Shown: positions 35,822 to 54,003, counted from the first letter of the whole stretch. The stretch is DNA of 54,003 nt, filler included, from Bipalium vagum (GCA_037834085.1; 3 parts of 3 records of this genome joined end to end with filler, not necessarily neighbours in it), one strand, 5' to 3'. The notes: generated from the sequence alone by a model not told the origin. Translations and numbers: made by a program.

Positions 35822-36040
35822 TTCCTTATATCACCAATAGGTACAATTCAAGTTATGTCCGAAATGTATCTGTCAGTACCGTCAAGAAAATTCTGAAAAA
35901 ATATGGTTTTCTAAATTATACAGCAATTAAGAAGTCTTTTTTGAAAATGCATCAACGACTCAAAAGACTTTCCTGGGTTAAGACTTACAGTACTTGGGAT
36001 GCAGATAAATGGGAAGATGTGGTATTTAGCAATGAGTGTT
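35822..36040 (+). mobile_element. Tc1-family transposase fragment
   Basis: VSVSTVKKILKKYGF..AIKKSFL..RLKRLSWVKTYSTWDADKWEDVVFSNE is a Tc1 HTH-to-catalytic-domain segment. Confidence 0.85.
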
Positions 36041-36377
36041 TTATTTTAAAATTTTAATTTTAAAAATGTACAAGCTCCACACATTAAAAGTGTACAGGTC
36101 AAAGATTCGCTTTTAAAACCATATTTTTAGAATTTCAATTAGATAGACAGAAAAACAGAAAAATCGTAAATAAAAATAATACACTAAATTTTGATTGAAA
36201 TTTTTTAAAAGTTAAAATAAAGTTTTTCTTATGGATTATTAATATATTTTTTCATTATTAAAATGTTATATAAAAACAAGATTTGGAATTATTTATTGCT
36301 CATTTCAAAAAAAAACAAAAAAGAATTGAGTTTATTAATCATAAAAATAATTTTTTGTTAAAAATATTCATTTTCAA

Positions 36378-36700
36378 GAATTATTAATGATGGAAAAATA
36401 AATATTTGGTGAAATAGAGGAAATGCAAGTTTTCGACAATTTAAGAAAGCATTTAGTCGGTAATGTTTATGTTATCTATCGCCTTGAAGAAGACGCAGAA
36501 AAAGTGGTCAATGAGCTAAGCTATCGATGATTTGATAAAAGGCGATCTTCGATGAATTTTCTTCTGTTACGGATTTTTGTGATGCTCACTGTGCACAGTA
36601 CCAGCAGAATATGTGCATCGTAATTTTATTCACTTTAAAAAGTTAACCCGAGATGCAGAGAATCAGTTAAGATCTTACTTAAGGATTAAGAAAAGGTAAA
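36378..36700 (+). pseudogene. U2AF1: U2AF small subunit (U2AF35) pseudogene fragment, intronless
   Basis: FGEIEEMQVFDNLRKHLVGNVYVIYRLEEDAEKVVNELSYR*F, then after frameshifts SSVTDFCDAHCAQY and NFIHFKKL. This matches the U2AF35 UHM and second CCCH finger, with stops and a deletion. Confidence 0.88.
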
Positions 36701-37559
36701 GATCCAAGTGAAATTCGGTTTAAGAAGACGAAATGATGAAAGGTGTGATATTTACGAGTTACAAAACTATGACGGTATTCATAATCTGCCAAAACTTTGG
36801 AAGTATGTTGTTATGAATGATGGGAATTATTCTACATAAAAAATTTTTAATGTAATTGTTTTTTTTTACTTTATATATATCAACTTTTTAGATTTCAAAA
36901 TGGCAAGATCAAGCTTGTAGACGTAATAATATAACACGTTGTTTTATATCATTCTTTTGATTTTTATTTAAAACATATTAACTTTTCTTATGTTATTTTT
37001 ATAGAAAATAGGTTCTCAATTGAAAATATTATAATGATTAATTATATTTTTGAGAAATTAATAATGTTGATAAAATTATTGCTTAGCTTTCGTCATAAAT
37101 TTAGAGACATCACTGGTTTTATTTTGAAAAAGAAGTAGGAGAATTCTTTCAAGCTGTATTTCAAATAACATATGTTTACAATACAATTACCAAAGAAAAG
37201 ATCCTTAATGAAATTATTAGGTCTAGCATTGTAAGATATAACCTTGAACGTGACAGCAATGCGATTTTACCAGGTCTAAATACAGTACTTGATCTATTAT
37301 AGAATTGATGTCTAATAGTGTGGTATCATTATTTATAGATGGTATATTCGGAATTTTCTACCAATGAAGGACAATTAAACTCGGAAACGCTAAGAGTTAG
37401 AACTACATTTCTTTTATTTTAACAAATAATTTAGAAAAAATTTGATGTACATTCAAAACACTAGCTGAATATTTGTTTTTTAAAAAATTTTAAAAACTAA
37501 TTTTTTTTAAACTGAAGTCTTTCGGTAGTAATTGGATTTAATAACCAAAAAAATTCCTA

Positions 37560-38113
37560 ATGAAAATTAAATTGATATTATTTTTGTTTTGAAAGGGTTT
37601 TTTTAACTGACGATGTAACATGACCAGATCCTTTTTGCACTGAATCCAAGAAAGGAACATGGAACATATGTCCTGGACCCTAAATTTACCGGCCATTAAT
37701 CCGAAAGAAAATTTATGAGGAGTGATTTTCTGTCAATAAAGTTTATGAAGGCTAAAGACAATTTCAGTTCATTAAGGAGCTGAAATCTGCTCTTCTCCGT
37801 TCTTGGAGAACATTGAAAACCCAGTGAATTCTATGTTACATAGAATTTCTCAAGTTATTAATTATCACGGATGTACCATTAAATTTTATTAATTTATTTT
37901 TATTAAACTTTTTCACGTTCAAAGTTTAAAATTCATTTTTTCAGTGTCAATAAATATTATTCGTTTAATTTAACTCAGTTCTTATTTTCTTGTAATTAAA
38001 ATTTTCGGTGTAAATTCAAAAATAAGCTTATAAATTTTTAGTTAGTGTGAAAGCTTAGTATTTAGCAGGATATATAAGATTTCTAGGTGAAGGAATAAAT
38101 TTGTTTCGCAGTG
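37560..38113 (+). mobile_element. Tc1/Tc3-like transposase C-terminal remnant and right end
   Basis: KVYEG*RQFQFIKELKSALLRSW..VNSMLHRISQVINYHGCTIKF. Ends in CAGTG|TA, the usual Tc1-type terminus. Confidence 0.7.
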
Positions 38114-38949
38114 TATATTGAACATTAATATTTTGATTTCATTGAAATTAATTAATGGTAAACATTATAAATGTACAATTATAATTATTTTTTAAAACCC
38201 ATCATTAATAAAATTTCGAAATCAGACAAAATTGAATCTTTTACTTTTATTAAGCGTCTGGATGAAATGAAGATGAGACCAACAGCCTACTTAGAAAAGC
38301 TTTTAGTTATTGATTGTTGTTAATTAATTTATTTAACATATTTCTAAGAATAAAAAGAATGATCCTAGAAAAGCAGTCCATTTTCTTAATCGAAATGTAG
38401 CCATTATATCATTAAAGAATTATTTATTTCTATTTAAGGATACTAGATTTTCAAATATTTTAGAAGATTTATTCACAATCCCAAAAGTAAGAATTCATTT
38501 AAATAGTTTTATTAAATAATAAAAATTTTCAATTATGTTTCGATTTTTTAGAAAAATATTTACATTAGATGAATTACAGATACGCAAGCAACTCAATATG
38601 TATTTCGAACTGACAAGGGTATATAAGCTAGGTGTGATCTGGCACTTTCATGATAAAATTTAGCTTTGTTTTTATACGTTCGAAAGATTGAACAAACACC
38701 TGAATATTTGAAAAATGATTATTTCAATTTAAAATTTTCCAGTATAAAAATGAAAACGAAACGTGATAATTTACTCGTCATAGTTTTTAATGATTTTTTG
38801 GTGAATTATCTCAACAACAGTTCACAAATCAACTTAGTCTTTTGCAGATAAAACCCACTATATATTGTTGATTCAAAGAATTTGATACTATCATAGTTTA
38901 CTTTAAATTGTGCCAATAAATATTAAACCCGTTTTCGATTTATGAGTAC

Positions 38950-39225
38950 ACGGTATATATTTCTTTTCAAGTTCAAATCTTCTTTTTTATGATCTTTATC
39001 GAGTGAAGGGCTTATTCATCTTTTTCTGCTATTTTTAACTATGGCTGTTGAATAGGATTTGTTGGACCTTGTTGGATTTGTCTTTTACCAATTTGCAAGC
39101 TTAATTCAGATATTATTTTTGATGAGGCTGATTTTTCATTAAGAGCATTTCAAATAATAGCTCGCACTTATTGATCTTAATTTTTTGTTATTTTTATTGT
39201 GACCTATGACTCCATAATTTTTCTT
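38950..39225 (-). mobile_element. Tc3-like N-terminal fragment
   Basis: Minus-strand VRAII*NALNEKSASSKIISELSLQIGKRQIQQ resembles the Tc3 second HTH, heavily decayed. Confidence 0.5.
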
Positions 39226-39802
39226 TTATATTGTGACATTAGTAATAGTAGTATTAATAATAGCATTTTTCTATTTCATAGGAAAATAATGCTTGCAAAC
39301 TGTTTACTGATAATTTCGACTTTTTAATTGCATCTCATCATTCATATAAATGAAAATCTTACGATTATTTTTTTTTCTATTATTTTTTCAGTTAACTAAT
39401 TCTATTAGTATTTTCTTATTATATGGACCATATTAATATATTTAATAAAAACAATTTCCACAAGGTTTTTTAATAAACTTAGTTTGACTTTATTTATTTA
39501 TTACATAGTTTTTTATTAATTTAATAAAAGTTAGATTTTCAAATTTTCAAAACTCGACTATTAGATTTAGAGTCAGATAATTCTTACTTGATTAATATTA
39601 ATATATTAACAGAAGAAATGAAGTAAAAATATTTTTTATTTCTAGCAAAAAAGATTACATTTCATCCTTTGAATTTCAAAATTAAATAAATTACTTTTAT
39701 CTTAATTTTAACATTTCTGCATTTACATTACTATAAATATTAAATTTACTAAAATCTTAATTTTCTTTTCGATTTCCTCTAATTTAACTATTTGATATTC
39801 AG

Positions 39803-40772
39803 AAATCCATTGGTGATTTTGAAACTTGGGTTTGTTTAATGAGTTAAAATTGATTCATGATTGTTTATTTGAGATAGCATCCAGAGGAAACAAGAATGAT
39901 GTCAGTGGTATTTTTATATTTGAACCATAAATCTTTTTCATTATTAAACTTTAGGGATATGGCTATGTTCCCACTAAAATTATTAGGAAAGTAAAATTAT
40001 ATATTTATACAAATATTATTTTTAAAATTTATTACGAAATTTTTGTTTTTATCTATAAATTGTTATTTTATTTCTGTTCTTAACTCTTTAAAAAACAGAT
40101 GTCAGAAAATCTCTTGGTAGAATCTATTCATAATTTATTAATTGCACGGTTTTTTAAATTAATTGAATATAATTTAACTAGTACATTTTAAATTTTCATA
40201 TTTAACTCACGTAATTTATTTTAATTTTATTTTCACAAATTTATGTATGATATTTTAATTTTGATTATATATTTTAGAGAAAATTAATACTGCAGCATCT
40301 TAATGAAGTAACACATTAATAATAAATGAGAAATTTTCAATTTTTTATTTTTCAGGATGATGGATCAGATTTTATGGTTTATTTATTTATTTTTTATTTT
40401 ATTATTATTTTATTATTTTATTAAGAATTATGAAAAGAAGGTATGATTTATATTTTTTTTATATTAAAAGGTTATAATCCGCAAATATAACAATATACTA
40501 ATCAAATAAAATCTCAAAGAGATACTTTTGTCTAATGCGAAAAATGATTATTATTAGGTTAAACTGTTTTCGGATTATTTAAATTATGATTTTAATTGTA
40601 GTATTATTTTTTAAACTTAAGTTATTATTTTTAGAAAATATCTCACCCGTTAACAGTAAATTTAATACAACTAATTGAAATTATTATGATTATATTTTAA
40701 TCAATGTAGAAGCCATTAGAAAAAGATGAATACAAAAATGAAGTAATTATTTTTAATTTTTCAATTCAATCT

Positions 40773-40843
<71 letters not shown>

Positions 40844-42617
40844 GTCTTTCTTTTTGATAAAAAAAATGAAAAACTTGTGATTTAAATCATTTAAAGCAGA
40901 AGTTTATTGCCAAATAATAAAAATGATTATTTTCCATAACTGTAAAATTCTCATTCTTTCATATTTTCTAAATATAAAAAAAATCTTATGCAATTATATT
41001 TAATTTTTATTAAATTATTCTTATAAAAATAAAATGATTTAACTTAGGTGGATAGTTCTACGAAAGATTCATTTTTCAGGGTATAATTATTTTCAGTTTT
41101 TATTTGCTTTTTGTATAATTAAATTTCGTTTGTTTCAAGATAAATGGTTATACAAAGAATCCAATAATTAAATTAAAAGAATATCAACTTTCTTGGAAAA
41201 ATAAAAATATTTCAATTCTTATTAAGAATTTTAATTTTTGCTAAATTTCTTTTTAGTTTGATATCGTTTTTATAAAACTATTTTGCATAATATATATTAA
41301 ATTTAATATTTTTCCAAGTTTTTACTCATTTTTGGTTTGTGTTTATGTTAATTGCTCTATGAAATGATTAAATTTGTTTTGTTTTGTTCCATTTAATTAG
41401 AAAAAATAAAATGTATAATTATTTATATAATTTGTGGTTTCTACTTTATTGTTTATTTATCATACAGGTCGGTTCTATAAGGAGAACTAAAATGAATGTA
41501 AGATTTTTAAAATAAATAAATCAAAAAATGTAAAACAAATAAAAATTTTTTATGATTTTGCAAAATATATTAAAGAATAATAAAAATATAAAAGTTTTTT
41601 ATAAGTTGACTTTTAAATATTAAAAATTAAAATATTATATCATTTAGGAAAATCTTAAATCTGGTATTATTCATTTAAAGGTAGGTTATAAAATAATAGA
41701 ATTTTCAAATTGTTTATGATAAATAATGTTTTTTGATTGTTAATTAAAAGTTCTCTATTGGTCAATTTAGAACAATTTTTTACAATTATAAATAAGACAC
41801 AAAATCTATCGAAACGGATCTCAAAATTAATAAAGCATTTTGTCATTAAATTTTATTTCTTTACTTTCAATTAAAAAATTATTATGTAAAATTTAATTTC
41901 AGGAATCCGATTTAACGAGAATGGTTAGATATTTTATTCAAAACTTTTCAATAAAATTCTTTAAAATAATTAATTATTATTAAGAAAAATTATTTTTATT
42001 TAATTTAAAAAATATTGATAAATCCTGAAATATGAATTTAAAATAATGAGCTGATTTTATGCAATGAATTATTAAAAATAAATAATTAAAATAAGATCGG
42101 TCTAAACACAAATATTGTATTTACTAATTCCTTTGTTATTTAATGATATGGTAAACTTTAATGAATTTATTTTAATACTAAGTAAACAAATTTCTGCATT
42201 AGGGTACATATTTATTTTATGGAAAATAAATCCTTAATTGAGTAAACGCTTCATCAGATTGTCTTTTATTTCATGTCATGTTTTATTGATGTTATCTGAA
42301 ATCTGAACCTTTTAAAATTATTTAACCTATCTATATATACATCATATTCCCCATATTTTTTATTAAATTTTATTAAAAATTGTTCTATTGAAATTATATA
42401 TTAATCTTTTTCTCTGTTTATATAATTGATTTAAAAAAATTTCATTGAGAATTATTTTTTAAAATTCAGGAATCAACTAATAAAGTAAAATTTATTTCTA
42501 CATTATGATAATTTTGCCTGTTAATATTACTTTTCATTTTAGTTGGATTATATAAAAGATCTTGTTGAGACAAGATATACGATCAAGACAATTAATTATA
42601 TGAATGATAATAAGTAA
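39803..42617 (+). CDS. micro-exon gene (MEG-like): about 15 symmetric phase-0 micro-exons plus a terminal exon, unknown protein
   Basis: Exons, each preceded by AG and followed by GT: 39803-39829 KSIGDFETW; 39878-39907 HPEETRMMSV; 39955-39990 GYGYVPTKIIRK; 40099-40116 MSENLL; 40278-40307 RKLILQHLNE; 40356-40376 DDGSDFM; 40426-40440 NYEKK; 40635-40655 KISHPLT; 40710-40742 KPLEKDEYKNE; 41048-41080 VDSSTKDSFFR; 41468-41497 VGSIRRTKMN; 41648-41680 ENLKSGIIHLK; 41903-41923 ESDLTRM; 42096-42116 IGLNTNI; 42470-42484 ESTNK; terminal exon 42543-42617 LDYIKDLVETRYTIKTINYMNDNK*. Six introns are 47-58 nt, the same size class as in the conserved genes here. Confidence 0.72.
40775..40842. repeat. (TAA)n microsatellite inside an intron of the micro-exon gene
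   Basis: Pure TAA run. Confidence 0.95.
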
Positions 42618-42981
42618 CTATTTATTATTTTTAATGGTGTTTATAAATATGGATTTTACTGAATATATTATATTTTCGTATGTTTTTAATCATTAAAAAT
42701 GAAAATTGTACTTGGGACTTCACAAAACAGAAAATCTTAAGAATTCGAACCAATGAAATATAACAAGAAAAAAATAATACAAGAATGTAAAGAAAATATT
42801 TTTAAATAGCATTGAAAAATTTCAAAAAGAAAAAACTTGAAATTAGAAATTTTAAAAAAAGTAACAGCTTAGTGATATGAAGAAGAAAAAATGAAAAATA
42901 TTTCATAGACACATAAATAATTACTGAAAAAATATTCAATTATATTTAAAATATTTTGAGTTAAATAAAATTTTATATTTA

Positions 42982-43330
42982 TTGGAGAAGAACTGCGCGG
43001 AATGTCTTCTATATTCATTCGATTTAAATCCCACTTCGTTTGGAAATATTTGGAGTGTGTCTTGCTCAGTAGCACAAAAGAATTTAAATACCTTACGCAC
43101 TACCATAACAAAGTCTTGGGATGAAATGCCTTCTGAAATGTTGCGATCAGCAGCTGAAAGTTTTATTAAGCATATAAACCTCTGTATTCATGCTGACCAT
43201 TTTAAAAATTATTGGCTTTTATGTTAAATAAATGTCTTATTTACTAATGCAAATAATTTGAATTAATTTCTTACAAATTCATGCCACATATAGATTTTTA
43301 CCTGTCTCCGCATTTTATTCATATCCTGTA
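42982..43330 (+). mobile_element. Tc1/mariner (maT-like) C-terminal remnant and right end
   Basis: YSFDLNP (SPDLNP-like) and NLNTLRTTITKSWDEMPSEMLRSAAESF..LCIHADHF. Ends in CCTG|TA. Confidence 0.75.
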
Positions 43331-44882
43331 TTTATTCCAATCTTTTTACCTTTATGTATAAGATATAATTCAAATCATTTCAATCTGGATTTTAGATGAA
43401 CATATTTTAATTCTTCTTTAAATCTATTTTATTTTTAGAAAAATAGAAATAAATTTAGACAAAAACAGTTAATATGGGGATTTAAGAAACAAAAATGTGA
43501 TTATCTAGAAATTTCTTTAAACCGAAAAACTAAAACAAATTTACATATAAACGGAAATTTAACTTTTTTATTGTAAAAAAAATGCTTTAGATTAATCAGA
43601 AGCTTTATTGGTTTTAGAAATAGAAATAGAAGGTATAAAAGTAGATGAAAATATAAATTTAAAATATGATTTTTTTCCATTTTATGTTCAAATAAAATTT
43701 CAAAACTGGGTTCAACAAAAAAAGAAAATATATTAACTCCAAATTTTATAAAAAATCTTTTTATTTGATAATGAAAATAATTAGGTTGGATTTCAGATAA
43801 ATTACAAAAAATTAAAATAAAGACTACATAGGTTTTATAACAAGTTAAAGTTAAATAATATTTATTATCAATTAAATGAATTATTTTTGAAGATGGTAAA
43901 ATAATAGAACTTATCTAATTTATGGCAAAGCTTGTGAATATTTTAATAGAAATCCACAATTACGTGTATTAAATTTTCAAAATTCTACATTTGGTTTTAA
44001 TTGGCATAAATTCCAACAAAGTGGTTCCTAACTGCCAATATGAAACTCATTGAAAATAAACCAGTAAAAAAACCAAACCTACTTTGACTGGATATCATGA
44101 CACTGTTCCACTCGTCTGTAAAGAGTTTTGAAATATTTGAAGTGCCTTTTTCTTTTTAACACTGTAGATTGTAATATTTATTTTAAGAGTTTTCCTTGTC
44201 TATTCCACTCTTCCTGGGGTATTTATTTATATATGTTTTTGTGTGTTTTGGTATTGAAACGCTTCAGTACTTATATTATTTTACTTTTTGTATTTTTAAA
44301 TTTATTAAATTAATGTTACTAAGTTTAGAATTTACCTTTAAAATTTTTACTATAAATTTATTTATTGTTATTTCGTATTTGAACTGGATTGAGCCGACGA
44401 ATTGGGAACTAGGCATGAGAGTCTCCACATATATATTATTTAAAGGTAACGTTTATATTTATAATATAGGATTACCGTACTTTGACAATTTTTGTTTGAA
44501 TATTTAGATTTAAGATATTTCAAAAGACGAAATATATATCGAGAACGTTAATGTATATATAATAAATACTACATACTATAATTAAATAGTTTTAGTCTTC
44601 GTCCAAGTAATTAAATAGAAATCGTGTTAATTAAAAATGTGAAAAATTATTTAAAATTCATTTATTTACCTAATAAATTTTTCAAAGGTAATTAAAATAT
44701 TTCTATATAATATGTCCAATTAAAATATTTCCGTGTTTAACTGAATTCTTAATTCGGTATTTAGTTTCATTAAATGATTACATTTAAATAAAAGTAAAAG
44801 TTATTTCATATTCGCCGGTATTAATAACATAAATTCATTTATTTTATTTTGTAAAATCTAGTTAAAATTTTTTTACTTAAGA

Positions 44883-47800
44883 ATGAGCTTATTTGAAAAT
44901 CAAAATGTTCTTAACGTCTATTTTGAAATAATTATTTCACCCACCCATGGACATAATAGTCAGCCTCAGAATAATGAGTTAAGCAACATAAATGGTTGTG
45001 GTGATGTAATGAAGTTTCCGTTATTTCAACGTGAATATTTACGCCACAACCAAACTGTAGAAGATATAGAAAAGAAGTTAGAGAGAGCTTCAGAAAGGAG
45101 AAACAATATTCTTCAAGTTAGATTGATTATAATTGAAAAGTTAATTCAATTTGTTATTTAGGAACTTAAAGAACGAAATGAAAATATTGTATCAAAAGCT
45201 ATGTACTTAGCCAAACAAAAAGAAGAGAAACTTAATCGATTTGCAGCTGACTTGAAAAATAGGTTGGAGGTAAACTTAGCTTTGAAAGAAAGCAGGAGAA
45301 AACACTTCATTGATGAAAAAGTGGAATATGCCAAAAAGAAGGTAAGTAATACATATTTTCATACATTTCCTCTAATTAAAACCTGTGATCGTCTTATTTT
45401 GAAAATAATATTGATCTAAATTTTTTCCCCTTATATACAAATGTTTTTGGCTGAAATTCATCTATTTCGGCAGATTTAAAAAACAAGTGTTAATAAGCTT
45501 TTTTAAAATGATTTTCTTATAATTTATTAAATAAAGGAGATAAGTTGGCACAACGCAAGAAAAATTAAAAATTCTCTAATATTTTTTACCTTTGTATCTT
45601 TTCATTAAAAATTAGTTAAATTGATTAAAATTATAAAAAAATACTAATAGATATGCCAAAAAATCCATTTTTTTAAAATTATAAACAATGTAATTGTTTT
45701 TCAGTTTAGATATTTAAATGGTATTTATATTATAATAAAATCAAGCGAAGATTCAATCCACTTCTGGTATTAGTTAATAAACAATTAAATTGGCTATACT
45801 ATAAGATATCCCCAGTTTTATTTTTGAAACATTTTATGATTGAAGGATAGAAAAAGTTTTAATATGTCATAGTATAATCATAAAAGCACTTAAAAATCAT
45901 TATAATAAAAATGATAAATAAATTAAGATTTCTTATTAAAATTTAAATATTTACCTTACAGTTACTCTGGCAACATATTAATTAAACAAATTTTAACATA
46001 CATTAATAAAATAATTATTGATAAACAAAATTTAAGCTTATTAATATCTAAAATTAAATTAAATTAGTTAACTTTTTTGATCATATTTTTTAGTTTTCTC
46101 TTGGGGTGAAATTAAAATAGATGATTAATTATGATATAATTAAAATACAATCAGGGTTAATTTCAGTATATATATATATATATATACTTATATATGGAAT
46201 TAGGGTTTATTTAAGTATATACAATGTATATTATACATACTTATATATATTGTATATATATTATTTTTTAAGTATACGCTTTTTAAAAAATATTTTTGAA
46301 GACGACAAATTTTATTTATACTACTATCTTGAAACATGTTTCGATCTCTTTTTTCACATCATCTTCAGTCAATTTTATTCTTCTTCGATGTCTATCTTCA
46401 AATGATATCACTATCATGATTTAAAAATATTATCTACATTATTATTGGATAAAAGTAAAAAAACTTAATTTTAAAAACCTTAAAAATATCATTTTTTAAT
46501 ATTTAAAAATTTTTTAAAAAATTATTTCTTTAAAAATAATTATTTTTAACATATTAATTAAGAAAAACATTAATCATCCATTGATTCCTGCTTTCTCCAT
46601 TTTTTGAATTAAGTTCTGGTTTCAGTTTTTAATTACTAATGATTCGCATATTTTTCTTTCTTCATCGTTATCAAAGTTGGTCATTACTACAGAAAACTCA
46701 TTTTCATTGGCATATTTATTTCCTTCTCTTTCTTTGCAGCTAACAGTTTGATCCAAAACTTTGCTTGTTCTACTTTTTTGAGAATGCTCACTAATTCGTG
46801 TCTTTAGGTGACGTTGTGTGTCCCATATGTATAGATGACAACATCCATGACATTGGAATTTGTACACGATATTAGCTTGCATTGGTTTTGAAGTCACTGT
46901 TCTAATTTTTTTAAAAATTTCGTTTTTGCTGTTAGAGATATTACTTTTAAACCTTCTTCATTTATTATCTGTAATATTTTACTTTTAAAATCTTGAATCC
47001 TTCTGAATAGGGAATTTTAATGATTTTCTTATATTCATTTTTTTCTTTCTTCTCGTTGCATTCTTTATTATTCATGAATTTATTTACGGTACCTTCTATC
47101 GTCTTTTCAATTTTCCAATTTGGATACGCATTATTTTGTAATTTTCTCTTTAGTTCATTCAACTCTATATCAATCTGTTTATAATCTGATGTTAAGGACC
47201 AAACTCAGTGTATTAATCATTTCATTAGGCCGCTTTTATACTTTTCCTCTGTTATTTGATGTGTATAAGCCGGTATCTGTTTTTTTTCTATATACTGATG
47301 TTTTCAATCTATTATTGTGCTCTTCTTTTGTTACTAATACGTCTTGGAATAGTAACTTATTCTCACTTTCCTTTACAATAGTGAACTTTATATTAGGATG
47401 GATATTATTCATGTATTCTAGGAATGGTTCAATTTCTTCTTCCTTTTTGAATATTAAGAATACATCGTCAACATACCGCGTATACACTATTGGTGTATTT
47501 TAATTAAAATCATTTATTTTCTCCTCTAAGCTATTCATAAATAAAGAGGCCAGTGTTGGTTCTAAAGGTAATCCCATAGAAACTCCGTCTCTTTGTGTGT
47601 ACCATTCTCTATTGAACAAAAATGAAACGCCTTTGGTACTAAATTCCAATAATTGCTTCATACTAAATTCATCCATGATGTCTTGATCACCTCTATCCTT
47701 TCAAAGAGAAACGCATAAATCAATTGTTTCCGAAATAGGCACATTTGTAAATAAACTGCACACGTCAAATGATATCATATGGTCTTTTTCGTAATTTTTC

Positions 47801-48796
47801 TCATAATTATTTATAAAATTACATAATTCAAAGCTGTCTTTCACCTCGTATTTCATTTTAATAATGGTTTTACCAATTCGTCAATAAATTTTGCTATTTT
47901 ATGTTGAGCACAATTTGTCATCGATAGAACTGGTCTTACCTGCTGATTATCTTTGTGTATTTTTGGCAATCCGTATAATTTTACCGGTTGTGACCCATGG
48001 GATATTAATCTGCTGACTATTTTTTTATATGATTACCTTTTACTAATTTTTGTATATGTTCTGCATTGTAGTAAATAATATTCAAATATGGAAATAGAAA
48101 AAATAAATAGCATAATAAGTGGTTCTTCTACACAATGAATTTCATGGTTAAGGAAGAACGGTCTGATGATAGACATAGATGGTTGTGATTGTTGTAAGAA
48201 ACCAATGAATTCTTATATCTGTACAAGAAACAAAATAAATTAAAATATATGATTAATTGGGAGGGGAACTAAAAATGATTTTAAAAATAAATGGCATAAT
48301 ATGTGTCCACGAATTACGGGTGTTTTGATAATCGATTGTTCAAAAAAGATAATTTATTTGCAATTAGTGAAGAATTAAGCCGCTCCAACATTAATGTGGT
48401 GAAATTAAAATAAATGATTGATTGAGGGGGACCTAAAAAAGATGATCCAAGTTTTTAAAAGTTTGATTTTTTAATTTAATTTTTTAAAGTTAATTCTTTA
48501 TAATTATTATAAAAGGTTATAATTTATAAATTATACATATATATATATAATTTTAAATACATTTACATACCAATTATTTGAAATTGAAATAAAAGGAGTT
48601 TGTATATTATTTTAACTATCTATCGTGTAAATAAAAATACAATTTAAATACTTATTATTTCTGAATTAGTTTTCATTATTTATTTCTATTTTTGTAACAC
48701 TAATTTTTCATCTAGATAGATAAAGTTATAGAAATGAAATCATTGAGAAAGTCAGAAATCAGTGATGCTGTGTATAATAAGGAAAATGGAAATTAA
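44883..48796 (+). CDS. stathmin: stathmin-family protein, about 164 aa, exons 44883-45116, 45162-45341 and 48716-48796
   Basis: YFEIIISP (stathmin FELILSP) and TVEDIEKKLERASERR (SLEEIQKKLEAAEERR), then a helical repeat ending YAKKK|IDKVIEMKSLRK..*. Both introns are phase-0 GT-AG. An acceptor just before the ATG suggests a further upstream exon is possible. Confidence 0.82.
46329..46372 (-). ncRNA. minimal type I hammerhead ribozyme in the PLE 3' region
   Basis: Minus strand reads UUGA-CUGAAGA-U-GAU(GUGAAAAAAGAG)AUC-GAAAC-AU-GUU-UCAA: intact core, stem I UUGA/UCAA, stem II GAU/AUC, and a palindromic stem III region AAACAUGUUU. Confidence 0.75.
46329..48030 (-). mobile_element. Penelope-like retroelement (RT plus GIY-YIG endonuclease), 5'-truncated and frameshifted, in stathmin intron 2
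   Basis: RT motifs YGLPKIHK..VRPVLS, FDVCSLFTNVP, QRDGVSMGLPL, YTRYVDDVF and VYRKKTDTG. Endonuclease NIVYKFQCHGCCHLYIWDTQRHLKTRISEH. The 3' region carries a hammerhead motif. Confidence 0.93.
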
Positions 48797-50559
48797 AATT
48801 ATTCTTATTATAATTGTAAGTAATTTCAATAATACATTTATTAACATCAGTTTTTAACTGAATTTATTGTTGATGTTTTAAAGTTTTAATTTTTATCATT
48901 CAAAATGATTTTGTTAAAACAGTTTCAAAAAATTTTGTAATATTTAAATTTAAATGGAAATTTTTATTAGAATTTAATTGTTAGGACTTTTTCAATGTTA
49001 TTTCAAGAACTTTTAAACGATTGGGAATTGGATGAATAAAAATTTATAAATATCTTCATAAAAATTGTAAATAAAATTATTAATATTCAAATTTCATTAA
49101 TATTTTATTTAGATTTGGTTTTTTAAAGAACAGACTTTATTTGGTCAAAAGTATTTGAAACTTCATTGAAATTTTATTTTAAATTTGTAAAAATGTGACG
49201 AAATTATTTTTATTTTGTTTAGATATTTATTTTGTAATTTAGTATATTGAATAATTTATTGGACATTTCTTGTTTCAATTTTTTTAATGTAAGAAAAAAT
49301 ATTTTATTTTGCTCTGTTTCATATAGAAAATTAATTACGTCAGTTGTATGGTACAAGCTGACTGGAACAATTATGTTTTGCTTTCAGAATTGGAAAGCAT
49401 CAAATAATAAAGATTCTCAGTTAATTTGGTCTACTTTTTATTAATTTATTTTATTTTAGTATTACCTTTACAATCTTAGATTTGAAATAAAAAGAGAAAT
49501 AAGTATTTTAATTTGAATTCCTTTTTATTTTTCTTGAAAGTAATGTTAAGTTATATAAGAATTATACAGCCAAAGTATTTTAATTTTATTTTTAAAAATT
49601 ATTCTGAAATTAATTTCATACAAGATCTAAAAAACTGAAAATTAACTTCTACAACTGTTTTCTATATCTATAAAACAATTTTTCTTATGTGATAATAATA
49701 ATGAAAATGAAGAAAATTCTGAGAAATTAATAATTAAAATATATAACCTGTAAAATAAGGAAAATTATTTTTTAAATTTATGAATATTATATTGAATTAA
49801 TTTTTTTGTGGATTATCTCTGGTAACTGGCATAATTTAAAATTTAATTTATTAAATTCATCAACTTTTCATTAAATAAATTTTTGTATTAAACAGGTTTT
49901 CAAATATTTTAAAGAATTTAACTATTCACTCTTAATAATTAAAATAATTTATTTTACATTAGTATTTATCCTATTTCAAATGTTACTTCACAAATTTATA
50001 TTTTCTGGTATATATTGCGAAAAATATTAAGTTATATAAAAGTAACAAAATAACTCTTCATACAAAATAAATTTTTAACAAAAATCAAACTTAGTCTTGA
50101 ATTTTGAAAAATAATCACGACGATCACCATTTATTTCTAACTCAAACAAGTTACTTTGCAGTAGTCATTGAGTATGTGGGCATTTTGTTGAGGCAGCAAA
50201 GGTCAATACCACTTATGAGGTATTCGTTGTTCTTGGTGATCATGACACAATTAGCTTTCAAACAGAACTGTTGATTGTCTTGACCTCAGCACAGGTAAAC
50301 GATAATTGCGATGAAATCATTTTAAGGATCAATGGAATCTTTTTTTCGTATTCTCCAACTAACAAGAATCCAATTACTGGTAATTAGAATCGGCATATTT
50401 CTATCACTGCAATCATACAGATGACAAGATTGTCCACTTTCCTCAGAAGTGATAGCACCATGTTTTTATTGAAATTTTCTCTCTTTGAATGTTTTCGATA
50501 GCTTTATAAATTTCTATCTTCGTTTACAATTGTTCAATCTTTCTCAGCATATTGCTTAA

Positions 50560-51250
50560 CTTTGCAAACTAAGTTTAAGATAAGGCTAAAGAAGGCCATC
50601 CAAAATCAACTGTGGTGCCAGTAAACATTGATGCCATCCGAGAAATGATAAAGTTTGATCGTCAATTTGACTTACTGCTAAATTCAGACCTCTTTGGGCA
50701 TTAGTATGACTATCATATATTGCATGAACATTTGACTGTGGAAAAACTGTGTGCCTATTGGATACCGCATAAGTTAACGAATGTTCAAAAAGTGGATCGT
50801 GTGAATTGGTCTAGAAATTCTTAAGAAATTCAATTCCGATTCTTCAACAACAGTTTACATCATAGTTACAGGCTATATCTTGGATATATGCGATTGATCC
50901 GGAAAATAAAAGGCAGTCGTCTGTATGGGTCTTCCAAGATGAACCAAAGACACCAGATGTTATTCGTGCTGGACGCACGTCGAAGCAAATGGTCGCCTGA
51001 AAATCTGGGCATATCGCAACTGTGACTTTAGGGGTTTTAAGTATGGTTAATTCTGCATGGTACACAAAAATTTAGTTGCCAGAAGTATTTTGTGAAATAA
51101 GAAAACCAATTCAAACCATTCTCCACCATGGCAAAGCCAGTTCTATCAATTCACAACAAACAAATAATTTTTTGAAAACCAAAAAAAATTATGGGACATC
51201 CTCCGTATAGACCTGGTTTGGCTATTAACTATTTTTTATTTCCATATGTG
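50560..51250 (+). mobile_element. degenerate mariner transposase
   Basis: EGHPKSTVVPVNIDAIREMIKFDRQ, WIPHKLTNVQKVDRVNW, IVTGYISWIYAIDPENKRQSSVWVF and GHPPYRPGLA. Confidence 0.88.
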
Positions 51251-52699
51251 TAGGGCTGACTAGATTGTTGAAATTTCCTTGAGAATCAAGTCTCATTTTA
51301 TTTTAAACATCTGGTCTCTCAAACACTAACTTTAACAAAAACGGTACCAAATACATTTGCATTGACAAACCAAAAAACCAAGCCAACGGTCGCAACCAAA
51401 ATTGTTGTCTCATAAATCATACTTTGTGTTAAAAAAATTTATATAACATTTTTATTCTAATATGTAATTATCTTTATTTTTAGTTTGAAAACAATACCGT
51501 TTTTTCCTTTATAAAATGTGATTATTTTGTGTATTGTATGTATAAAATTAATAAAAATAAATAATGAATTCTTTTTTTTTCCTAAAATATTAATTAGTAA
51601 GTAGAAAAAATAATAACTTAAAATAAAAACAACTACCTAAAGTATACTGAGCGACACAATTCTTACAGTTAGAAGTGTCATTATAACTTCATGAATAATG
51701 TAAGTAATGAAATAAAAGTTGTATAATTATATTTAATATAGTAGCACTTATATTAATTATCACTACTTAGATATATATTAATTTTTGTTTAAATAATATT
51801 TAAATGTTTACTGTTTTTTTAAATATGCTAAACGACACAATTTTTTGGCAAACCTTATAAATTTTTAAATATTAATGATTTTAACCAAAATTTTTTTAGT
51901 CATTTATATGTTATTAATGTTTATCTTACTTTTAGATATTATTATGAAATCTATTGAATTAAAGTGTTTCAATTAGGTTAAAAAAAGAAGGTAAAAGTTA
52001 TGGTGCAATTGGTACGATTTTAGGCATATCCAGATATGCTGCTAAACGGTTGGTGACCTATAAATATGTGGTACACAAAGGAAAACGTGGGAGAAAAAGA
52101 TTATTAAGTAAAAAGTAAAATAATAGTTGTATAAATAATAATATTATCTGAAATAAATAGAAGCTACTGAATGTAGAAAAATAAATATTTGCTTAAGATA
52201 AATAAAAAAGCTCTTAGGTACTACCCAAAATAAATAATCGCTAGCAATATTAGTAGAATTTTGGTAAAATTAGCAAATAATAAAAATTGCTAATGGCTGA
52301 AAACAGGACTATAGAAACCCCTATTCCCCGTCATAAACTCAGACAGGAGATTCTTAAAAATACAAATTGAGATTTCTATTTTGTAAAAAAGAAGTAAATA
52401 AAACTCTCCAAGTTTGGTAGCGAAATAATTTAAATACGAAAGATAAATTAAAGTAAAACGATAAAAAAGGTAAAACAAAAATTAATAGTATAATTAATTA
52501 CTATCGGTAATTAAAAGAAAAGCTTTACATTATTGATTTCTTTTTACATTTCACTATTTCTCTTTATTGTTTCTTGAGAACCCTAATCTCTAGGATTTAG
52601 AGTAAGATTTTTCTAATAGATAGAATCTTCGATTTTCAAAATTCCAGAGCGAGGATAATAATAATTATTTAAAGAGTTTCTTATAAAAAAAATTTATTA

Positions 52700-53470
52700 A
52701 AAAAAGTGCTATTTTAGTTTAATAAACTCTCCTATTATACACACTCCCTTCACAGCTGTGATGAGGCTTTGTCGGACCAGAATACATAATCATCGTTGGT
52801 ATGATATTTTTGAATGAATGGAATTTAAATTTTAGCCAAACATTTCTTTTCATAAATTTCTTTGTTGATTGCCAGGCCATTTGGCCTAAAATATGGTTCG
52901 ACACACTTTTGCTTGAGACGACTATATACATCGTCACCTTTGGTTCAAATTTATTTTAAACTTGAATTTAACTTCCGCTGCAGCCGTACTTAGATCCTTT
53001 GAGTAATAAATGTCATTACGGGAATTTCATTCTTACTTAAAGGGAAATAACTTTCGTCATCCAAAATATAAATTTTCCTCGAGTAATTTTTTTCATTCAA
53101 CGCCATCTTTTTACTTGTAATATATCCGATTCCGTATATGCTGATCACTTGCTCTTCTTCCTGATTATAATAACAGCCTTTTTCAATGCTTTCGAAATAT
53201 ATTGTTGCGTACAACCAAAAGTTGTTGGGACTTCATTTTGATTGATATTGTCTTTATTGTCGAACATGCGCTCTAGGAGTTTAAAACGTTTACCTTTCAT
53301 AATAGTTGGTGTTCTGTCAGATCCTGTTTTACGATTTACTTGTTGACCTCGTAAAATATTATGGGTTTTAGCACATCTTCCAAGAAAAATGATCCAAGGT
53401 GAACTTTTTGCCAACATCAATATATTTTTTATAAAATTGTACAATTCGAATTCGACGTACTTTTTGTTTT
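52700..53470 (-). mobile_element. Tc1/mariner-superfamily (ITm) transposase remnant
   Basis: RKTGSDRTPTIM..FGCTQQYISKAL (HTH region), ILDDESYFPLS (first catalytic Asp) and KFEPKVTMYIVVS, with several frameshifts. Confidence 0.75.
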
Positions 53471-54003
53471 GACGTGATTTCTGAGATAAATTTTGTTAAA
53501 CAAGTCGATATTATTTATTAAATCAATTAAGTAAATACCATCTTATGATTGTTTTTAAACAGAATTGGATATTGTTATATTGCAGAAATTCTATTTGCAT
53601 TCAAAAAAATGCAAAATATAATTGTAACCTGTTACGTTATAAATACCTCGTGATTTTCATCATTATATACATTGATGTCATTGTGATAATGTGACTCATT
53701 ATTTTGCGACAGGGACGACTAAGTCTATGTACATAAGCTTAGAATTTAAAAGGAAAATGTAATTGAACATAGAAAGTACAACACCAGATTCTTAATTTTC
53801 ACTTCTTTCGAAAAGTTACTGATAAGATGTTAAATATTTTTTGATTTCTTTTAAGGAACAACAATATATACTTAATGTAAGGATTAAATTATAATTAATA
53901 TTAAATAATAAATAATAAATATTTTAAAAATAATTTTTAAAGTAATATAATAATAATAAATTTAATCCTTAATGTTTTTTAATTATTTTAATAAATTTAA
54001 ATC

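Follow-up and report, generated by a model that had tools for sequence, protein, structure and literature searches.

A cluster of very short, open and splice-flanked segments at positions 39803-42617 of a 54,003-nucleotide (nt) window from the genome of Bipalium vagum (GCA_037834085.1; three parts joined end to end with filler) probably represents a real, canonically spliced and unannotated protein-coding unit on the plus strand. The putative reading frame would be cut into at least 16 phase-0 exons, namely 15 micro-exons of 15-36 nt and a last exon of 75 nt. An initial annotation, made by eye, had proposed here a hidden phase-0 micro-exon gene of the kind known as MEGs (micro-exon genes) in schistosomes. 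The cluster exceeds what selection bias can account for and the observation is statistically robust, since the proposed gene survives tests by enumeration, shuffling, strand, comparison windows, codon use and intron length. The likeness to schistosome MEGs is one of architecture: no signal peptide or hydrophobic segment was found in the model, and six of its introns are under 60 nt.

The exon model

The cluster lies in a piece of animal-like DNA (35822-54003, G+C 16-36%), of which it is the most AT-rich part (G+C 16-20%). It had been described as devoid of open reading frame (ORF) calls, and only two AT-rich chance ORFs of at least 45 amino acids are indeed present. All 16 segments were reproduced on the plus strand with the positions, lengths, spacers and borders given initially: an AG precedes each, and a GT follows the first 15. 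The lengths are 27, 30, 36, 18, 30, 21, 15, 21, 33, 33, 30, 33, 21, 21, 15 and 75 nt, every one a multiple of three (3n). When joined (459 nt), the series is open in phase 0 only, as had been claimed, with the terminal TAA as its one stop, whereas frames 1 and 2 contain 14 and 22. The shortest spacer has 47 nt and the longest 387 nt; six measure 48, 47, 48, 49, 54 and 58 nt. The G+C content is 0.30 in the segments and 0.156 in the spacers (84% A+T), the segments being purine-rich and the spacers T-rich on the plus strand.

The single exons differ in how well they are supported (Table 1). Ten, starting at 39803, 39878, 39955, 40356, 40426, 41048, 41468, 41648, 41903 and 42470, are well supported by their splice features. 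Support is fair for the four that start at 40099, 40278, 40635 and 40710, which have a strict YAG acceptor and GTA donor (Y, pyrimidine) and fewer extra features, and weak for the one at 42096. The alternative segments pointed out earlier are present and open, namely 39874-39900 at micro-exon 2, a nested 12-nt segment (40296-40307) inside micro-exon 5 and an extra 45-nt candidate (41797-41841); the first of these reads in another frame. In the terminal exon, use of an alternative GTTGAG donor after 42563 would leave a 21-nt micro-exon.

The segments do not repeat one another, in agreement with the earlier description, and no internal repeats were found in the region except a (TAA)23 microsatellite. 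This microsatellite is perfect and occupies 40774-40842, in the spacer of 305 nt that separates micro-exon 9 from micro-exon 10. A search of the public DNA sequencing run of Bipalium vagum at a likeness of at least 80% returned no second copy of any exon, only low-complexity AT-rich matches. A repeat or transposon origin of the islands was rejected on these two grounds, the absence of mutual repeats and of a second copy in the DNA run.

Comparison with chance

The exon choice was assessed by an enumeration that is independent of it. Every AG..GT pair of 15-36 nt was listed without regard to length class or frame, and scored for six splice features: Y at position −3 (YAG), an exon that begins with G, eight or more T in −18 to −4, an exon that ends in G, A at +3 and G at +5. 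Eleven pairs in the region carry at least four of the six features; 10 of these 11 are 3n and open, and these ten are all exons of the model, the eleventh being nested within exon 12. The ten fall within a single span of 2766 nt that starts exactly at 39803. Outside the region, segments of the same quality number six in the other 15.4 kb of the plus strand and three on the whole minus strand, that is nine in 33.6 kb. When the whole piece was block-shuffled 400 times, with both strands considered, the family-wise largest cluster had a mean of 2.2 and a maximum of 5 such segments, and none of the 400 reached 10.

A second and simpler count gives the same picture. Strict YAG|15-36 nt|GTR pairs (R, purine) number 20 in the region, and 13 of them are 3n and 12 both 3n and open (10 non-overlapping), against one open 3n pair on the minus strand of the region. 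Markov-2 shuffles average 1.8, and none of 5000 attains 12. When shuffling is confined to blocks of 12 or 30 nt, by which G+C islands and local skew are kept, the mean rises to 3.8 (P about 0.001). In 87 other real windows on both strands the mean is 2.7 and the maximum 8. An enumeration against shuffled and other DNA had been suggested at the outset as a check on the exon choice, and the enrichment of open 3n segments is evident in it. It is the quality of the splice signals, and not the loose count of AG..GT pairs, that separates the cluster from other windows.

Splice consensus, codon use and intron length

Independent lines of evidence were obtained by comparing the 15 micro-exons with a null set of 229 open picks made elsewhere in the piece. 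The YAG frequency is 0.87 in the micro-exons versus 0.36 in the null picks. G is the last exon base in 0.53 versus 0.14 and the first exon base in 0.47 versus 0.19, A is found at +3 in 0.80 versus 0.32, and the upstream T tract amounts to 0.55 versus 0.36.

Codon-position composition was compared after trimming of the edge codons, and here the micro-exons resemble the two exons of a neighbouring stathmin-like gene and not the null picks. G at codon position 1 has a frequency of 0.22 in the micro-exons, 0.27 in the stathmin-like exons and 0.12 in the null picks, and T at codon position 2 has frequencies of 0.27, 0.27 and 0.48, respectively. The heterogeneity among codon positions is above that of shuffles conditioned on openness (P=0.004). 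The amino-acid make-up is likewise close to that of the stathmin-like exons (the residues F, Y, M, I, N and K together 0.40; D, E, S, T, H, Q, V and C together 0.38), while the null picks are dominated by I, L, F, K and N.

Spacers of 45-60 nt make up 6 of the 15, with 1.7 expected (P=0.002). As initially noted, the six short spacers (47-58 nt) share their size class with the intron of the stathmin-like gene, which is 45 nt long and reads GTTAGA..TTTAG; its GTTAGA donor is identical to the donor of micro-exon 13.

Table 1. Exons of the predicted micro-exon unit and the neighbouring gene; splice features refer to the six scored in the enumeration.
Feature	Position	Strand	Length (nt)	Peptide	Remarks
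Micro-exon 1	39803-39829	+	27	KSIGDFETW	cag acceptor, GTT donor; 4/6 splice features
Micro-exon 2	39878-39907	+	30	HPEETRMMSV	in-frame ATG ATG inside
Micro-exon 3	39955-39990	+	36	GYGYVPTKIIRK	ttag|G ... |gtaaaa
Micro-exon 4	40099-40116	+	18	MSENLL	ATG directly after cag; weaker: 3 features, A-rich tract
Micro-exon 5	40278-40307	+	30	RKLILQHLNE	strict YAG/GTA
Micro-exon 6	40356-40376	+	21	DDGSDFM	strong T tract, cag|G, GTT donor
Micro-exon 7	40426-40440	+	15	NYEKK	aag acceptor, G|gtatga donor
Micro-exon 8	40635-40655	+	21	KISHPLT	strict YAG/GTA
Micro-exon 9	40710-40742	+	33	KPLEKDEYKNE	strict YAG/GTA; next spacer 305 nt
Micro-exon 10	41048-41080	+	33	VDSSTKDSFFR	ttag|G ... G|gtataa
Micro-exon 11	41468-41497	+	30	VGSIRRTKMN	acag|G ... 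|gtaaga; 5/6 features
Micro-exon 12	41648-41680	+	33	ENLKSGIIHLK	ttag|G ... G|gtaggt; 5/6 features
Micro-exon 13	41903-41923	+	21	ESDLTRM	tcag|G ... G|gttaga
Micro-exon 14	42096-42116	+	21	IGLNTNI	weakest: aag acceptor after A-rich tract
Micro-exon 15	42470-42484	+	15	ESTNK	tcag|G ... |gtaaaa
Terminal exon	42543-42617	+	75		24 codons + TAA; 58-nt spacer before; good T tract, tag acceptor
Stathmin-like gene (weak assignment)	44883-45344	+		MSLFENQNVLNVYFEIIISP...	own ATG at 44883; two phase-0 exons, 44883-45116 and 45162-45344

Predicted unit and alternative explanations

From this architecture we infer the transcription, splicing and translation of a coding unit, and a start for it; the unit could amount to a complete small gene or to just the 3′ part of a gene. 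The introns would be canonical GT-AG introns of 47-387 nt with 84% A+T, and with six of them in the short class of the genome (45-60 nt) splicing would most likely proceed by intron definition. As all predicted exons are phase-0 and 3n, the skipping of any would keep the frame.

This last property is the basis for a special case of the coding unit, in which regulated skipping would produce many protein variants as in schistosomes, and which we regard as doubtful. Any subset of the exons would remain in frame, several in-frame alternative segments are present, and the predicted unit falls within the operational definition of a MEG (PMC7653826). Symmetry, however, permits skipping without demonstrating it, and it is from symmetry alone that skipping and diversification are inferred. 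Moreover, the model lacks a signal peptide or other secretion signal, the conserved feature of schistosome MEG proteins (10.1101/2023.06.21.545858), no paralogous family was seen in the DNA run, and introns this short would favour constitutive splicing by intron definition.

It is quite unlikely that the segments are the relic of a recently functional micro-exon gene, now silent or pseudogenised, which has lost its 5′ end in transposon-littered surroundings. Such a history would agree with the lack of a first exon or an ATG in good context upstream, with the weak signals of some exons and with the contents of the flanks, which hold Tc3-type debris, a U2AF35 pseudogene fragment, a remnant recognised by eye as mariner-like and a Penelope-like element. 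Yet all 16 segments are open and in phase with intact splice dinucleotides, and decay in such AT-biased DNA would soon bring stops, as their number in the two other frames illustrates.

Several points weigh against a genuine coding unit. Its start codon and first exon are undefined; micro-exon 1 carries an acceptor and is therefore not the first exon of a transcript, so that at least part of the transcript must lie further upstream. A homologue, domain or paralogue did not come to light, the single micro-exons with their 5-12 residues being too short for such searches; Pfam returned nothing for the 24-residue last exon, and back-translated patterns of exons 3 and 2 had 0 matches in metagenome contigs. 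The sole public sequencing run that matches 39700-45500 is a DNA run, and to our knowledge genes of such architecture are rare outside flatworms. Five exons (40099, 40278, 40635, 40710 and 42096) show at most three of the six splice features. The features, though textbook consensus, were fixed after the exons were known, and the comparison DNA amounts to 18 kb only. Under a loose criterion (AG..GT, 3n, open) there are 25 candidates in the region, and greedy chains of 9-15 arise in other windows of the piece. Finally, on the minus strand at 42100-45800, 15 of 23 strict YAG..GTR pairs are 3n and eight are open, with poor, A-rich acceptors, an excess apparently due to chance. Because this control is so similar, an excess of 3n lengths is weak evidence when it stands alone, and as such it was rejected.

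The loose candidates and chains, the minus-strand excess, the missing homologue and start codon and the DNA origin of the only public run would all suit a series of pseudo-exons assembled by eye from DNA of 16-20% G+C, rich as it is in AG, GT, runs of T and short open frames, but such a chance origin is distinctly unlikely, as the cluster was recovered without the original choices, exceeds the opposite strand, 87 other real windows and shuffles of both kinds (Markov and block), and is enriched also in features that the initial annotation did not name as criteria (G as first and last exon base, bias by codon position and length class of the introns). The caveat of selection bias attached to the initial annotation was accordingly justified for the loose criterion, while enumeration by splice features recovers ten of its exons.

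Predicted product and 5′ end

The peptide of the preferred coding model has 152 residues, one third of them charged and none of them Cys, with a grand average of hydropathy of −0.87 and an isoelectric point of 8.65. Its maximum hydropathy in a 15-residue window is 0.42. Being hydrophilic and without a hydrophobic segment, the model peptide has no predicted signal peptide or membrane segment, and the product would probably be a soluble, largely disordered intracellular protein that is not secreted. The absence of a signal peptide had been remarked upon before, and it extends to the upstream DNA: within 1.9 kb upstream of the model, the 5′ end of which is undefined, no phase-0 exon was found that opens with ATG and encodes the long hydrophobic run required of a signal peptide.

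Translation may start at the cag|ATG at 40099, at the ATG ATG in exon 2 or in exons further upstream. A speculative reading is spliced-leader trans-splicing, with which both the cag|ATG at 40099 and a similar acceptor-like site 1 nt ahead of the neighbouring gene's ATG would be consistent. Upstream on the plus strand, three open symmetric AG..GT segments with fair splice signals are found at 38255-38305 (51 nt), 38439-38486 (48 nt) and 38580-38618 (39 nt), with a possible ATG near them at 38171 or 38535. These segments may be further exons of the micro-exon unit and are statistically inseparable from chance; they were left out of the model because they lie among transposon debris.

Neighbouring gene and genomic setting

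Downstream of the micro-exon locus lies the stathmin-like gene used for comparison above. Its assignment to stathmin is weak, resting on a reading of the motif FEIIISP after the ATG and on a Pfam match to PF00836 that is below the cut-off (E 0.022). The ORF had no homologue in a database search, no match to a solved structure in PDB and no recorded gene call. The acceptor-like tttttttacttaag stands 1 nt before its ATG and might point to spliced-leader trans-splicing. The possibility that the micro-exons are 5′ coding exons of this gene was considered and rejected, as the gene has its own ATG at 44883 and the acceptor-like site is out of frame.

An Rfam scan of the whole piece gave no match. 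Remnants of mobile elements are found on either side of the locus. Tc1/Tc3-type transposase debris at 35878-36021 (+) matches Pfam HTH_Tnp_Tc3_2 (E 1.5e-6), and a second, C-terminal-like piece of this type at about 37600-37860 (+) was recognised by eye only. Between the micro-exon locus and the stathmin-like gene, an 81-amino-acid ORF (42982-43227, +) resembles by eye the C-terminus of a mariner/Tc1-type transposase and has no Pfam match. A broken Penelope-like retroelement on the minus strand (46622-47856) comprises pieces of a reverse transcriptase (Pfam RVT_1, E 0.0017), with a YVDD motif, and after them a GIY-YIG-like ORF, and the nearest database proteins are 46-49% identical to its reverse-transcriptase fragment. 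A fragment at 36420-36527 (+) resembles the 35 kDa subunit of the splicing factor U2AF (E 1e-8 to PDB 1jmt), ends in a stop and is probably a piece of a processed pseudogene.

Relation to known micro-exon genes

If real, the unit described here would be a gene that ordinary gene finders and read aligners miss, and it would extend the MEG architecture, known to date from secreted proteins of flukes and tapeworms, to a short-intron gene without a signal peptide in an animal genome of very high AT content. A bolder reading, which we hold to be unlikely, is that of a MEG-type gene outside the parasitic flatworms that would diversify a non-secreted, intracellular and disordered protein by combinatorial skipping of 15 symmetric micro-exons between introns of minimal length. 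Were this true, protein variation through micro-exon architecture would be shown to be general, and no longer a device peculiar to the interface of flukes and tapeworms with their hosts. The criterion that emerged from the analysis, about ten open 3n segments with at least four of the six splice features per 2.8 kb, could be used genome-wide to look for a hidden class of genes.

The first MEGs to be described were those of Schistosoma mansoni, followed by others in Echinococcus and Hymenolepis. Such genes possess several micro-exons with lengths divisible by three, which can be skipped without loss of frame, and both their annotation and their alignment are difficult (PMC7653826; 10.1101/2023.06.21.545858). 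Micro-exons as such occur throughout biology, and Olson et al. 2020 have defined MEGs operationally as having at least seven exons, at least half of which are micro-exons of less than 70 nt and 3n length, with a run of at least four (PMC7653826). The in-silico model has 16 exons, ten of them recovered by the enumeration that did not depend on the original choice, and 15 of the 16 are 3n micro-exons of 15-36 nt. These 15 are consecutive in the model; the ten high-confidence exons taken alone form runs of three (exons 1-3) and four (exons 10-13). On these counts the predicted unit falls within the definition, which is an architectural one.

Other systems of short exons share part of this architecture. 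Collagen-type genes, with phase-0 exons of 27, 36, 45 or 54 nt, also consist of long series of short symmetric exons and would pass the same operational filter. In contrast to these, the model contains no Gly-X-Y or other repeat, and exon lengths such as 30, 21, 15 and 33 nt are not multiples of 9. The single micro-exons of 3-27 nt found in ordinary genes, neuronal and other, are likewise tiny, often 3n and missed by annotation. Conserved micro-exons of this kind are isolated among normal exons and flanked by long introns, whereas the locus described here has 15 in a row, which account for almost all of the reading frame.

Schistosome MEGs have introns of 0.1-5 kb, encode secreted products with a signal peptide at the N-terminus, the sole motif to be conserved across their proteins, and form paralogous families (10.1101/2023.06.21.545858). 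In this superfamily it is the central micro-exons whose skipping gives rise to protein variants. In the present model, 6 of the 15 introns measure 47-58 nt and the longest 387 nt, the predicted peptide is hydrophilic and contains neither Cys nor a signal peptide nor any hydrophobic stretch, and the DNA run showed no paralogue. The predicted unit is thus MEG-like in architecture only, and what it shares with the MEGs of schistosomes and tapeworms is their run of 10-20 very short 3n exons, here 15 consecutive ones in a unit of 16.

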